A stretch of 64,000 nucleotides of DNA, from the sequence record PQ464595.1; one strand, 5' to 3'. The notes below the pieces were generated by a model. It was not told the origin of the DNA and ran no database searches. It saw nothing but the letters and a program-made list of their open reading frames with translations. The position numbers and the translations under genes were made by a program. Shown piece by piece: positions 41,978 through 46,919 of this stretch. Within the stretch, counting starts at the first letter, position 1; each line of letters starts with the position of its first letter.

Positions 41978-42005
41978 GAAAAAAAGGAAATCTCACGATT
42001 TCCTT
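41978..42005 (-). terminator. Intrinsic terminator after spanins
   Basis: AAGGAAATC-GTGA-GATTTCCTT-TTTTT (GNRA loop). Confidence 0.8.
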
Positions 42006-42350: not shown

Positions 42351-42715
42351 TTAGTTTTCTTCCCGTTGATAATATCAGCAGATTGTTGACGATATTCTTT
42401 CAATAAATCAACACCAGCTTGATCCATACACTGTTGTAGGTAAATTGGTTGTTGTAGAATAGTTTTCTCTTTGATGATAGTGTTTGTCTTAGCATCAGCA
42501 AGTAAATCTTTCTGATCTTCTAAACCTTGAGCTTGAGCACTTTGGTACTTTGAGATACCAGCATCAACGATTTTCTCTACTTTTTGGTCTAAACTTTCTT
42601 TATATCCATCATAATATGTATGGACTTTCCAGCCACCGAAAACCATAATAATTGTGTACAGAACGAACGCAACAATGGTAATAGGGAGCTTGTATAACTT
42701 AATAAAATCTAACAT
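42347..42715 (-). CDS. Inner-membrane spanin (i-spanin, Rz-like)
   Basis: N-terminal TM, periplasmic helical region, PIYLQQCMDQAGV. Confidence 0.78.
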   Translation of the reverse strand: MLDFIKLYKLPITIVAFVLYTIIMVFGGWKVHTYYDGYKESLDQKVEKIVDAGISKYQSAQAQGLEDQKDLLADAKTNTIIKEKTILQQPIYLQQCMDQAGVDLLKEYRQQSADIINGKKTK

Positions 42716-42745
42716 GGTACACCTCTTAATACTTAGGTTATACCA

Positions 42746-42753
42746 TATTTAAT
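42746..42753 (-). promoter_or_regulatory. Late promoter (ATTAAATA)
   Basis: Between the terminator and the spanins. Confidence 0.55.
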
Positions 42754-42755
42754 GG

Positions 42756-42780
42756 AAAACCCGCCATTCCTGACGGGTTT
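42756..42780 (-). terminator. Intrinsic terminator after the ACP gene
   Basis: AAACCCG...CGGGTTTT. Confidence 0.6.
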
Positions 42781-42788
42781 AAGTGCTA

Positions 42789-43196
42789 TTAATGTGTAAC
42801 CGCACGTAAAATATCATCAACGGTACGGAAGCTTTCAGCAACCCAATCGTCGATTTCAACATTGAATTCTTCTTCAACTGCCATGATGATTTCAATCATG
42901 TCCAGTGAATCCATCTGAAGTTCTTCAACCAGGAACTGAATAGATGCTTCTGGTTTTACGTACTCATTGATCACATCAATATGTGAACCGGATTGATCTG
43001 CGAAGATCTTACGAAGTTTATTCATAGTATGATCTTCAACTTTGAATTCACGGTTAACCATAGTGTCGATGGTTTCCTGCCGCAGATTCTTGATTGTTTC
43101 TTCAACTTGCTGAAGAATCATATAACGTTCAGTACTGCTGGTTTCGTTCAGATATACAGACTCTAACTCACGCAGTACTTGATAAAGACTTGGCAT
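42789..43196 (-). CDS. Acyl carrier protein homolog with ~55-aa N-terminal extension
   Basis: LVEELQMDSLDMIEIIMAVEEEFNVEIDD...TVDDI aligns with E. coli AcpP [29 protein letters not shown]; Ser97 in DSL. Confidence 0.9.
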   Translation of the reverse strand: MPSLYQVLRELESVYLNETSSTERYMILQQVEETIKNLRQETIDTMVNREFKVEDHTMNKLRKIFADQSGSHIDVINEYVKPEASIQFLVEELQMDSLDMIEIIMAVEEEFNVEIDDWVAESFRTVDDILRAVTH

Positions 43197-43743
43197 GTTT
43201 GATCCTCTCTTTGAATCCAGCAGTAACCCGAATGAGTAGACGCTGGCAATTGGTTTCTAGTAACGGACAGTTGTGAAGTACTTTACTGGTATACTTATGA
43301 GCCGTGCTTGTTGGAGCAACAGCTTCTACCAGTACTTCATTCCTGAGTACATCTTGTACTGAATTGTACCCAATAACGTTGATTGGGTTCATAACGAAGC
43401 TCGTACCCTGAACAGTACCGAAGATGATATGTGTTTCAGGTTCGAAGTCATCATGAATGTCATTAGTACAATCCAAATGGTATCCGTACAGTTGTGAACC
43501 ACTATCACCCGCAGATAAATTACGAACGCGATAATCCACGACAACTGACCGATCATCGTATTTTTTGACTTCATCAATCATACGCTGTACCAATTGTGCC
43601 ATATCGGGAGGGATGTTGGCAAGTACTTTTTGCGGGGTTTCGTATTTAAATTCCTGAACAGGGAGGTTATCAGGAACCTCCCAACTGAACAGATTTAATT
43701 CAATACTACCCGTAGGTTGTAAAGTATTAATGTCCACAGTCAT
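43168..43743 (-). CDS. 2OG-Fe(II) oxygenase-like protein
   Basis: H89-x-D91 (GYHLD), distal H157 (VLHNCP), R168/R172 (RLLIRV). Confidence 0.55.
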   Translation of the reverse strand: MTVDINTLQPTGSIELNLFSWEVPDNLPVQEFKYETPQKVLANIPPDMAQLVQRMIDEVKKYDDRSVVVDYRVRNLSAGDSGSQLYGYHLDCTNDIHDDFEPETHIIFGTVQGTSFVMNPINVIGYNSVQDVLRNEVLVEAVAPTSTAHKYTSKVLHNCPLLETNCQRLLIRVTAGFKERIKHAKSLSSTA

Positions 43744-44206
43744 ATTCTTTTACCGTAATCTGAACAGTTTCACCAGTAAAATCAATGACAATATTGAAGT
43801 TAGTTTGATAAACTACTTCTAAGCCATCTTCGAACTTCGCAGCACTAAGAATGTCTTTAATTTTTTGAGCATCTTCGTTTGAAAGATTGCTGTTAGCAGT
43901 TTTGTATGCTTCTGGACACTCACTTTCATCACGCCAGTACAAACGCTCAACATACTCACTTACGGTATCCCATGAACGGGTATCATCATGAGTAATGAAT
44001 ACTTCAGAATCATGAGTACATTCTTCTCCGTCATTCCATTCTGGAGTTTCCCCTAGAACGAAAATGAAATCCAGTGCTGGGAACTGAGCCTTAAGCTCAG
44101 CACAATCGTATTTTAATTCATCAAGGAATTTAGCCTGAAGATTCTTTTTCAGAGTTTTTAAAGTTTCTTGGTAATCAGTTACAGCAGTTTTCACATTATC
44201 GAACAT
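43727..44206 (-). CDS. NDGxxCxH-family paralog 4
   Basis: GETPEWNDGEECTH...EYDCGH; start moved to ATG 44206. Confidence 0.75.
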   Translation of the reverse strand: MFDNVKTAVTDYQETLKTLKKNLQAKFLDELKYDCAELKAQFPALDFIFVLGETPEWNDGEECTHDSEVFITHDDTRSWDTVSEYVERLYWRDESECPEAYKTANSNLSNEDAQKIKDILSAAKFEDGLEVVYQTNFNIVIDFTGETVQITVKEYDCGH

Positions 44207-44207
44207 A

Positions 44208-44666
44208 TTAGTATCCACAGTAGTAATGATGAACTTCGATAGTTGGTTCTTCACCAGTTAGATCGATATAAACTTTGAAGTTAGTATCATTTTGTTCTTC
44301 AAGTAGATCTTCCAGATGACCAATGATGAAACGGATTTCATCATTATTTTCTGGTTTGATGATATTAATAGGATTTTCATCAAGATAATCTTCATATTCA
44401 TCATATTCTAAATTTTCTGGAAGACCTAAGAACTCTTGATTATCATCAGCAATTTCATACAAATCATCATCATAATATGGAGTACTCCAGTGTTCACATG
44501 GATCTCCATCGTTAAATGATGGTGTGTAACCAATAATAATGATTTTGTTTAGACCGTCAAATTTTTTCAATTTAACCAATCCATCTTTGATAATGCGGTC
44601 AATATTATCGGAAAGATACTTACGATGTTCGATATAAGTATCGAATGAATTAGTGTCCACAATCAT
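44208..44666 (-). CDS. NDGxxCxH-family paralog 3
   Basis: GYTPSFNDGDPCEH...HYYCGY. Confidence 0.75.
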   Translation of the reverse strand: MIVDTNSFDTYIEHRKYLSDNIDRIIKDGLVKLKKFDGLNKIIIIGYTPSFNDGDPCEHWSTPYYDDDLYEIADDNQEFLGLPENLEYDEYEDYLDENPINIIKPENNDEIRFIIGHLEDLLEEQNDTNFKVYIDLTGEEPTIEVHHYYCGY

Positions 44667-45147
44667 ATTCCTCTAAGGTAATATCAGTTTCTTCAGTTGT
44701 AAAATCGAACAAAGCCAAATAATTAGTATATTCAATTTGTTCAACCAGATAATCCAGAAGTTGGATTAACTCACGAACTTTTGGTTCATCAGCGTCAGAA
44801 TAGGTGTTTACATTTTCAAAACCTTCCCAATTCCACGGTTCACCAGATTCCTGAACTTCTTCTGGAACATTCATCATACGGAAGAATGAATAGTCTTCTT
44901 GTTCCGCAAATTCCTGAAAATGATAATCACGGAACAGACATTCGCTGCTATGAGTACAAGCATCACCATCGTTAAACCCTGGAGTATAACCATAGATCAC
45001 GAGCTTATTCATTCCTGGAATAGCTTTTAATTGAGCAGCAACGTCTTTCAGAATCTGACGTTTATTAGTACTCAAAAAGTTTGACAAGTCGCATTTCGCG
45101 GCGTCAGATTTAGTTTTCAGTTCTTGAAATTGTTCAAACAGTGTCAT
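44650..45147 (-). CDS. NDGxxCxH-family paralog 2
   Basis: GYTPGFNDGDACTH...EYDCGH; start moved to ATG 45147. Confidence 0.75.
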   Translation of the reverse strand: MTLFEQFQELKTKSDAAKCDLSNFLSTNKRQILKDVAAQLKAIPGMNKLVIYGYTPGFNDGDACTHSSECLFRDYHFQEFAEQEDYSFFRMMNVPEEVQESGEPWNWEGFENVNTYSDADEPKVRELIQLLDYLVEQIEYTNYLALFDFTTEETDITLEEYDCGH

Positions 45148-45148
45148 A

Positions 45149-45565
45149 TTAGTATCCGCAGTAGTATTCTTCATGTTTAATGGTGATCTCACCATCCTGG
45201 ATAATAAATCCAAATTTGTAGTTCGTTCCGTAGATATGAATCAGAATTTCATCCAGTACTGCTAGTTTAACTTCAATGGCACGACCTTCTGTATCATTCA
45301 GATTATTATCATCATAATCTTCTGCTACATCTTCGATGAAATCAGTAATATCATTGTCCATGTAGCGAATCTGAATGTCGCTACTATGTTCACATGCTTC
45401 ACCATCATTCCACTCAGGAGTATAACCAACAATCATACCGTTGGTTAATCCTGGATGGTCAATACCCAATTCTTTAATGAACTCCTTCATGATTTCGTCA
45501 TGATGTTCATTCAGGAGGGTATTATATACTTCACGAGCGGTTTTAAATTGGTCTAGGATGTTCAT
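45149..45565 (-). CDS. NDGxxCxH-family paralog 1
   Basis: GYTPEWNDGEACEH...EYYCGY; start moved to ATG 45565 (TAATG). Confidence 0.75.
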   Translation of the reverse strand: MNILDQFKTAREVYNTLLNEHHDEIMKEFIKELGIDHPGLTNGMIVGYTPEWNDGEACEHSSDIQIRYMDNDITDFIEDVAEDYDDNNLNDTEGRAIEVKLAVLDEILIHIYGTNYKFGFIIQDGEITIKHEEYYCGY

Positions 45566-46815
45566 TATTTGTTTCCATACCACTGCATCTCACGCATTTC
45601 AATTAGCAGTTTAGCTGCCCTTTTAATGTCTGGAGAGTGTGGTAATACAGATTGTTTATATAGTACTTCACGGATGTAATGATCTTTTTCTTGCCAGTAT
45701 TCCATCATTTCATCGAACGTCCACGCACCATTACGGATAGCCAGAAGTTCTGCTGCGTCAGGTCGTTTGACATGAACTTCACCAGTACTCAATGCTTCTT
45801 CAGCAGTACGCATTAGACGAACAACATGCATCGCATGTTTTGTATCGTAGCCGTTCTGTTGTTCTAACTCAGAACGTGCTTCGTTACGGTTTGCTTTCCA
45901 TGTATGATAGTTGTGACGGTTGTCAGAACTTTTCTCGTATTCTTCCTTGTTGAATTTTACGATCAGCTTTGGTTGTTCTTTAACTTCTTCAAGTGATAGA
46001 TTGCTCGTATCAATACGATGAACGCTACCATCATCATTCAGTGTACGACCACCTTCTTTTGGAACAACACCAAATGTGTTATCACCGTAAGGAACTAACT
46101 GATAGCCGTAATTGTAATTCAGAATTGTGAAGTCACGATCCAGTACTTGATGATCAAAATAGTTATGAACCAGTTTGATGAAGTGATACTGTTTCAATGG
46201 TTGAGTACTCAACATCTGAAGGGAAGCATTACGAAGTTGTTTTTCGAAATGGAAATCCATTGAGGTTTTAACATACTGACCACGACCGCGTTCAACGTCC
46301 AGAAGACCCATAACATAGTCAGGGAATGTATCACCAATCCACTGAATAGTCTGTTCACATGGGAAAGCATCGAAGAATTCCTGGAGAATACGAACACCAG
46401 TACGTTCACGATCCATCCAGCCATGATGGTTCTTCATACGTTTAGCCTGGTTATGAGCATAGCCAGTATAGGTAAACGCAATCTTAGAAGACAGTAAATC
46501 GCCACGAGCCGCACGAAGATGATCGTACAATCCAGTACTAACCTGAATGTCACCTTCATCAACCCACAGTGATTCTAGGATGTTCGGGTTCGCATCAAGA
46601 TACAGTTTCATGTAGTTGTTAAGTTCGTAGTACTTAGTATCTTCTTCTTTAGAATCGGTTACTTCATTTACGGTGAAGAACGGAGTCAGGATGAATTCTT
46701 TATCAGCCATGAAGATACCACGGAAATCGGTATCTGAGGTTGGAGTACTAGTACCGTAAGCCTGGGAACCTGCCAGGTGTCGGACAATAAGATTGTCTAA
46801 ATGATTATCTGCCAT
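45565..46815 (-). CDS. RlaP-type (Pol beta superfamily) nucleotidyltransferase
   Basis: AGSQAYGTSTPTSDTDFRGIF, ANPNILE, YDTKHAMHVVRL, LLAIRNG. Confidence 0.85.
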   Translation of the reverse strand: MADNHLDNLIVRHLAGSQAYGTSTPTSDTDFRGIFMADKEFILTPFFTVNEVTDSKEEDTKYYELNNYMKLYLDANPNILESLWVDEGDIQVSTGLYDHLRAARGDLLSSKIAFTYTGYAHNQAKRMKNHHGWMDRERTGVRILQEFFDAFPCEQTIQWIGDTFPDYVMGLLDVERGRGQYVKTSMDFHFEKQLRNASLQMLSTQPLKQYHFIKLVHNYFDHQVLDRDFTILNYNYGYQLVPYGDNTFGVVPKEGGRTLNDDGSVHRIDTSNLSLEEVKEQPKLIVKFNKEEYEKSSDNRHNYHTWKANRNEARSELEQQNGYDTKHAMHVVRLMRTAEEALSTGEVHVKRPDAAELLAIRNGAWTFDEMMEYWQEKDHYIREVLYKQSVLPHSPDIKRAAKLLIEMREMQWYGNK

Positions 46816-46919
46816 TTTGCTTCCTTGTTGGAAAATCCAAGATGTTATAAACCATAACAGGAACTACTTTTTCACGTTGTAGTCTTCCTTGTGATTGTCG
46901 GTATCTTAACGAATTGGTA

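Follow-up and report, generated by a model that had tools for sequence, protein, structure and literature searches.

What do four small, divergent genes lying head to tail in a jumbo phage genome do, and what holds one internal loop and the last few residues of their products nearly constant? The genes occupy positions 43727–45565 on the minus strand of a 64,000-nucleotide window (the whole stretch of DNA analyzed here, to which all coordinates without a locus prefix refer) that is 100% identical to Erwinia phage Kaldavass (PQ464595.1, 366,556 bp), a RaK2/GAP32/CBB-like jumbo myovirus of the genus Mimasvirus with 87% identity in this region to Xanthomonas phage XbC2. A preliminary description, made from the letters alone, had reported four tandem paralogs with a common loop, G-x-T-P-x-[WF]-N-D-G-x-x-C-x-H, and a common tail, Y-x-C-G-[HY]-stop, and both hold: the open reading frames, of 159, 152, 165 and 138 amino acids (aa), stand head to tail, and alignment places loop and tail in all four. 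Pairwise identity among the copies is 32–34%, with G, T, P, N, D, G, C and H of the loop motif invariant, and the proteins are acidic (isoelectric points 4.1–4.3). Their similarity is not due to chance, because each gives a full-length hidden Markov model (HMM) match to nearly the whole 153-position profile of PHROG 10375, with E values of 3e-30 to 8e-43; in the whole 366-kb Kaldavass genome these four are the only copies. We put at about even, roughly 50%, the probability that they are long-established paralogs acting as dedicated partners of a co-translated enzyme, in Kaldavass a minimal 2-oxoglutarate (2OG)-Fe(II) dioxygenase to which they would bind.

Because the family sits directly upstream of the oxygenase gene, dedicated partners or substrates of this enzyme are what its members most likely are. 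The gene in question (43168–43743, minus strand, 191 aa; PHROG 21561) lies directly downstream of the fourth paralog, and a PHROG 21561 oxygenase immediately follows a family member in all RaK2-like loci. The same order recurs in 11 unrelated IMG/VR contigs of 5–395 kb, and the oxygenase is downstream at four of five loci found in bacterial genomes (Ancylobacter, Agrobacterium, Sinorhizobium and a Planctomycetota metagenome-assembled genome). When IMG/VR was searched from the oxygenase side, using two narrow oxygenase alignments, all 16 strong matches had a family member directly upstream, and ten weaker relatives had neither an adjoining family member nor any other conserved neighbor. Given this division between strong and weak matches, we conclude that the minimal oxygenase clade and the family are an obligate pair. 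Members of the distant oxygenase clade exceed the minimal form by 25–80 aa; they have two insertions, and a Q-V-Q-V-Y extension is conserved at their C-terminus. This clade (L070–L080, IMG/VR) keeps the motifs C-I-P-G-W-H-L-D-D and W-R-W-F-x-R.

The product of 43168–43743 is, judged from its predicted fold and its conserved residues, a minimal 2OG-Fe(II) dioxygenase. Its AlphaFold2 model (predicted local distance difference test score, pLDDT, 91.5) is a double-stranded beta-helix (DSBH), and the best 50 matches of this model by VIA were all 2OG-Fe(II) oxygenases, with Z scores of 7.0–9.7 over 136–170 residues (SnoK 9.7, PHD2 9.5, Pseudomonas PPHD 9.1, ALKBH3/7 8.1); Foldseek returned HygX and ABH2 at E values of 5e-4 to 1e-3. 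The H-x-D...H iron triad and a basic residue for the C5 carboxylate of 2OG are present: His89-x-Asp91, His157, Arg168 and Arg172 do not vary among 17 homologs, of which the most distant share 18% identity. It is on fold and residues that membership in the superfamily is assigned, as 17 oxygenase members had no Pfam match (2OG-FeII_Oxy models included) at E values up to 1, and the oxygenase had no sequence match in the PDB.

The linkage extends to the reading of the genes themselves. Paralog 1 (45149–45565, minus strand, 138 aa; PHROG 10375 E value 8e-43), which adjoins an RlaP nucleotidyltransferase gene, has its loop at 45386–45427 and the tail YYCGY-stop at 45149–45166. Paralog 2 (44650–45147, minus strand, 165 aa; loop 44950–44991, tail YDCGH-stop) starts 1 nt past the stop of paralog 1, and paralog 4 (43727–44206, minus strand, 159 aa; loop 44012–44053, tail YDCGH-stop at 43727–43744) likewise begins one base past the preceding stop. 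The ATGs of paralog 3 (44208–44666, minus strand, 152 aa; loop 44490–44531, tail YYCGY-stop) and of the oxygenase gene lie inside the Tyr-Asp codons of the preceding tail, so that each overlaps the gene before it by 17 nt (43727–43743 in the case of the oxygenase). The same 17-nt overlap between tail and oxygenase start is present in RaK2, GAP32, BF and related contigs and in the distant loci L042, L013, L014 and L033; elsewhere the family and oxygenase genes overlap at the stop or are separated by at most 23 nt. A T-[AV]-D-T-N peptide that recurs at gene starts is the +1 reading of the codons for Y-D-C-G-[YH]-stop. The start of paralog 2 in GenBank is at window position 45195, giving 181 aa and a 47-nt overlap with paralog 1; homolog alignments and the pattern of the other junctions favor the ATG at 45147 as the probable start.

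Such overlaps invite the explanation that the conserved C-terminus is only a by-product, at the nucleotide level, of the next gene having its start and ribosome-binding region there, and it fits that the downstream ATG falls within the Tyr-Asp codons and that a Gly GGA codon stands just upstream of several starts. However, the Y-[DE]-C-G-Y tail is retained in L036, L015, L032 and L020, where the genes do not overlap, so that it is a feature of the protein; tails of this type are kept in 179 of 194 members in many contexts, and the members described below that have another partner end just as precisely in a different conserved tail. We consider the by-product explanation very improbable.

The family to which these proteins belong is very large, unnamed and essentially confined to phages, and corresponds to PHROGs 10375 and 9564. 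An exhaustive HMM search of 1.84 billion cluster representatives gave 5180 clusters at E≤1e-3 and 1614 at E≤1e-10 (clusters counted at 50% identity), a word-indexed search with a profile of the four sequences gave 53 proteins, mainly of RaK2-like phages, and a pattern-based scan of 185,579 prokaryotic species genomes gave five loci only. The family's clusters in the ESM Atlas are 81–96% viral and unnamed. That its function is uncharacterized, as first supposed, was borne out: the PHROG match is annotated as function unknown, scans of the four proteins against Pfam, NCBIfam and PADLOC (PADLOC at E values up to 1) gave no meaningful match, a Pfam scan of 146 diverse members gave no relevant match and none to DUF600 or SUKH, and the family profile found no match among PDB sequences. 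The loop and the exact C-terminus, which had been proposed as the most conserved parts, are indeed so. Invariance across the 146 members is confined to N, D and the first Cys in the loop, with Thr, Pro and Gly of the loop and Tyr, Cys and Gly of the tail present in at least 90%. Phe takes the place of His60, which follows the first Cys, in 22 of 190 sequences. Of 194 sequences, 145 close with Tyr, 36 with His, 8 with Trp and 2 with Phe, and the tail Cys is replaced by Pro in about ten members, with Arg, Ser or Val also occurring.

Part of this variation follows the identity of the neighboring gene. Members without the oxygenase adjoin a gene for DUF6915 (PF21866, PHROG 8143), usually standing right after it; this pairing was found in 16 non-redundant IMG/VR loci (e.g., L041:7537-7905 and L046:7602-7967) and in one genome of Nocardia. 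The two partners do not occur together at any locus, and DUF6915 is absent from Kaldavass. Of 48 oxygenase-paired members 46 have His at position 60, and this class has a (C)G[YH] tail and Gly at position 47; in DUF6915-paired members (class B) position 60 is Phe in all 18, the tail is mostly Y-x-H-D-stop, and positions 47 and 51 are usually Gln and Tyr. Loop positions 47, 51 and 60 thus covary with the tail. Because these loop positions change along with both the extreme C-terminus and the kind of partner, loop and tail are most simply read as parts of a single site that faces the partner. DUF6915 itself has four invariant histidines (His6, His40, His45 and His78) and several acidic residues; a sequence profile found no relative of it in the PDB, the ESM Atlas returned only DUF6915 itself, and we found no paper on it. 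Two related large class B contigs carry a cupin gene (PHROG 4786, ‘cysteine dioxygenase’; L025:5298-5792 and L028:6464-6949) between DUF6915 and the family member, with a class II (Lys/Asp/Asn-type) tRNA synthetase and an aminotransferase-like gene in the vicinity.

These patterns bear on the earlier proposal of a Cys/His metal site closed by the free C-terminus. One half of it fits, in that a composite site made of loop and C-terminus is plausible from the covariation of both with the partner; the other half, a fixed Cys2His site, does not extend across the family on the evidence of the alignments, in which only the first Cys is invariant. We rejected a structural, zinc-finger-like Cys/His zinc site, which calls for three or four invariant ligands where there is one invariant Cys and the terminal residue is Tyr in 145 of 194 sequences, and also a Rieske-type 2Fe-2S center (C-x-H ... 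C-x-x-H), for which the second His, the terminal residue, is present in just 36 of 194. A looser role for metal is conceivable, in which the small acidic protein would hold Fe(II) or another metal at a site of Cys, His, Tyr, Asp or other carboxylate ligands and pass it to the oxygenase or to the histidine-rich DUF6915. Both partners look metal-dependent (the HxD...H triad in one, the four invariant His and the Asp/Glu residues in the other), ligand-type residues shift between loop and tail as the partner changes, and the proteins are acidic and tightly co-translated with that partner. Yet only one Cys is invariant, some members lack both His60 and the tail Cys, and metal delivery would not readily account for two to four conserved paralogs serving one client, so that we regard a chaperone or donor as rather unlikely.

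The predicted structure of the small proteins raises a further explanation. The AlphaFold2 model of paralog 1, built from a 37-sequence alignment (pLDDT 90, predicted template modeling score 0.81), opens with a long N-terminal helix and two strands between which the conserved loop runs; a short helix, then the variable acidic insert and another long helix come next, and a beta hairpin leads into the tail, with pLDDT values of 79 in the loop and 75 in the tail as against 90–96 in the core. Its best fold matches, by both Foldseek and VIA-align, are the DUF600 proteins EsaG (8guo_A) and BH3703 (3i0t), and both matches are weak (Z scores 5.3 and 4.8, root-mean-square deviation 3.5–3.7 over 88–96 residues; Foldseek E value 0.05); a fold search of BFVD with the family model returned only members of the family itself. 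EsaG-type immunity genes are also found as tandem arrays, and agreement of two independent methods on EsaG and BH3703 would suit immunity- or inhibitor-like proteins that keep the partner enzyme inactive or shield the phage from it. However, TM scores of 0.32–0.36 are low and the Z scores fall below the 7–8 typical of the best background, no Pfam DUF600 or SUKH match was obtained in the four proteins or in the 146 members, and the neighbors are a 2OG oxygenase, an RlaP nucleotidyltransferase and an acyl carrier protein (ACP)-like gene rather than a secreted nuclease toxin, with no toxin delivery domains nearby. An immunity role therefore seems quite unlikely.

The array had also been taken as the product of an arms race with variable host proteins, and its history does not agree with this. 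Kaldavass and XbC2 each have four copies, GAP32, BF and their relatives three, and CBB, RaK2 and their relatives two; nearly all other phages have a single copy. In a maximum-likelihood tree of all RaK2-like copies and six single-copy outgroups, copies cluster by position and not by phage (support 100/100 for the first, 97/95 for the last and 99/88 for the middle copy), and paralog 3 (152 aa), on a long branch, is a Mimasvirus-specific duplicate of the middle copy that is present in Kaldavass and XbC2 only. Between Kaldavass and XbC2 the genes are under purifying selection, with ratios of nonsynonymous to synonymous substitution (dN/dS) of 0.078, 0.087, 0.088 and 0.142 for paralogs 1 to 4 and of 0.02–0.15 for neighboring genes. 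The complete four-copy array is present in contigs of three independent metagenome studies, with 8–23 differences over about 3 kb, and relatives of the stretch 42700–46900, near-identical contigs included, were found in food, plant, silage and wastewater samples from 11 studies. In one silage contig, a diverged relative, paralogs 2–4 are replaced by 479 other bases. Degenerate extra copies, now without the loop motif or the tail (the end reads E-C-W-D-E-Y, with no C-G-Y), lie at L022:8314-8868 and L038:11642-12043; duplicates can therefore decay outside the RaK2-like group.

On the tree and dN/dS together we rejected a recent arms-race duplication. Free-standing metal-binding effectors, duplicated in tandem and directed at variable host or defense proteins, would account for four divergent copies with a variable acidic insert in a phage-restricted family of no known function, but they are unlikely: dN/dS values of 0.08–0.14 are those of the neighbors, the position-specific orthogroups are older than the RaK2-like genera, most phages have a single copy, the linkage to an enzyme gene is strict, and no PADLOC or anti-defense match was found. 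By the phylogeny and substitution rates, the array appears to be a case of stable subfunctionalization and not of a fast arms race.

How dedicated partners of the oxygenase might work can be put as follows. Each small acidic protein would fold as an alpha/beta platform, on which the T-P-x-[FW]-N-D-G-x-x-C-x-H loop and the free Y-x-C-G-[YH] tail would make one exposed site, and this site would dock on, or be acted on by, the iron center of the oxygenase. A single oxygenase would have two to four of these paralogs as its partners, differing mainly in the acidic insert, and the array may thereby diversify the targets or products of the enzyme. The role of the partner could be of three kinds. A specificity or presenting subunit is suggested by the several conserved paralogs per enzyme and by an enzyme that does without the insertions of its partner-less relatives; a protein substrate is suggested by the invariant, presumably exposed Pro/Asn/Asp/Cys loop and by an enzyme that is close to protein prolyl hydroxylases; and a metal donor is suggested by the ligand-type residues and by two probably metal-dependent partners. 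The substrate role can be framed as an explanation of its own, in which the small proteins would be oxidatively matured by the oxygenase (elsewhere by DUF6915), through hydroxylation of Pro, Asn or Asp or through oxidation of the invariant Cys or its cross-linking with the terminal Tyr or His; this is a tentative alternative, to which we would give a minor share of the probability. If it were true, the proteins would be a new class of post-translationally modified phage proteins or protein-derived cofactors, with four in Kaldavass.

Several points weigh against a dedicated oxygenase partner. The family also pairs with the unrelated DUF6915, and its core function therefore cannot hinge on 2OG chemistry itself. 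Some copies next to the oxygenase gene (GAP32, L008, L011 and L017) no longer have the C-terminal Cys. Adjacency of genes does not require interaction of their products, so that binding of the oxygenase to the paralogs is something we infer, and the proximity of loop to tail is likewise suggested by covariation. Among sequencing runs recorded as RNA, and with runs kept as contigs only, none held this stretch.

Upstream of the array, the RlaP-type nucleotidyltransferase gene (45565–46815, minus strand; Pfam PF10127 E value 1e-15, PHROG 388) overlaps the start of paralog 1 with its stop by 1 nt, and a gene of this type is also near family members in L019, L023 and L039. Downstream, the ACP-like gene (42789–43196, minus strand), annotated as ACP in XbC2 and with a DSLD motif in its translation, shares 29 nt with the 3′ end of the oxygenase gene; among the loci compared it is restricted to those that are RaK2-like, and for that reason we place it outside the core pair. 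A scan for promoters and terminators gave no internal signal above shuffled background. The sole terminator-like hairpin on the minus strand is at 42005–41984, the first one downstream of the gene run that holds the array; with a 9-bp stem and T-runs on both strands, 41984–42005 resembles a bidirectional terminator. More widely, family members have genes for nucleotide metabolism and RNA or DNA repair in their neighborhoods (RlaP, Thg1, RNA and DNA ligases, NT5C and a class II tRNA synthetase), and PHROG 2290, a small acidic protein of unknown function with a W-E-N-D-A-D stretch, recurs near them (L021:7274-7690, L027:7274-7690 and L032:5779-6240).

In the literature and databases we found no paper or entry in which the family, the clade of minimal oxygenases or the pair that they form is named, and neither the description of Kaldavass nor a jumbo-phage review mentions these genes. 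Through the pairing, two sets of ‘hypothetical proteins’ become a single two-component system that can be tested, and a family of more than 5000 clusters is tied to a specific enzyme. Phage 2OG oxygenases, whose substrates are largely unknown, gain an obvious first candidate, and the pairing with DUF6915 is a first functional lead for that domain.

Set beside what is known, the nearest entries are PHROGs 10375 and 9564, to which the four genes match over their full length and which give no function, partner information or motif description. The oxygenase shares the DSBH core and the HxD...H...R residues of the enzymes in the systems PHD2-HIF and Pseudomonas PPHD-EF-Tu (PDB 4iw3), with Z scores of 9.5 for PHD2 and 9.1 for PPHD, and the small proteins present an invariant Pro/Asn/Asp/Cys loop of the kind that such enzymes modify, its modification here being putative. 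In contrast to those systems, the putative partner is encoded in the same operon, is translationally coupled and exists in one to four copies, and the enzyme, at 191 aa, is far smaller and without a match in Pfam. EsaG and other DUF600 (YezG-like) proteins, the best though weak fold match, are also small acidic alpha/beta proteins occurring as tandem paralogs beside the protein that they bind; they differ in having no sequence-profile relation to this family, whose neighbor is an oxygenase or DUF6915 and which has the N-D-G-x-x-C loop and a fixed C-terminus. The TlxI-TlxJ heterodimer (PDB 7vbq) and the carrier-dependent SyrB2-SyrB1 system are cases in which a 2OG oxygenase relies on a second co-encoded protein for its activity or for presentation of its substrate, and both enzymes were among the structural matches (Z scores 9.2 and 7.8, respectively). 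Unlike in these, the second protein here is not itself an oxygenase, nor is it a phosphopantetheinylated carrier, and an ACP-like gene follows in RaK2-like phages only. Two-protein oxygenase systems are thus a known kind, and what is new is this particular pair, its scale and its restriction to phages.

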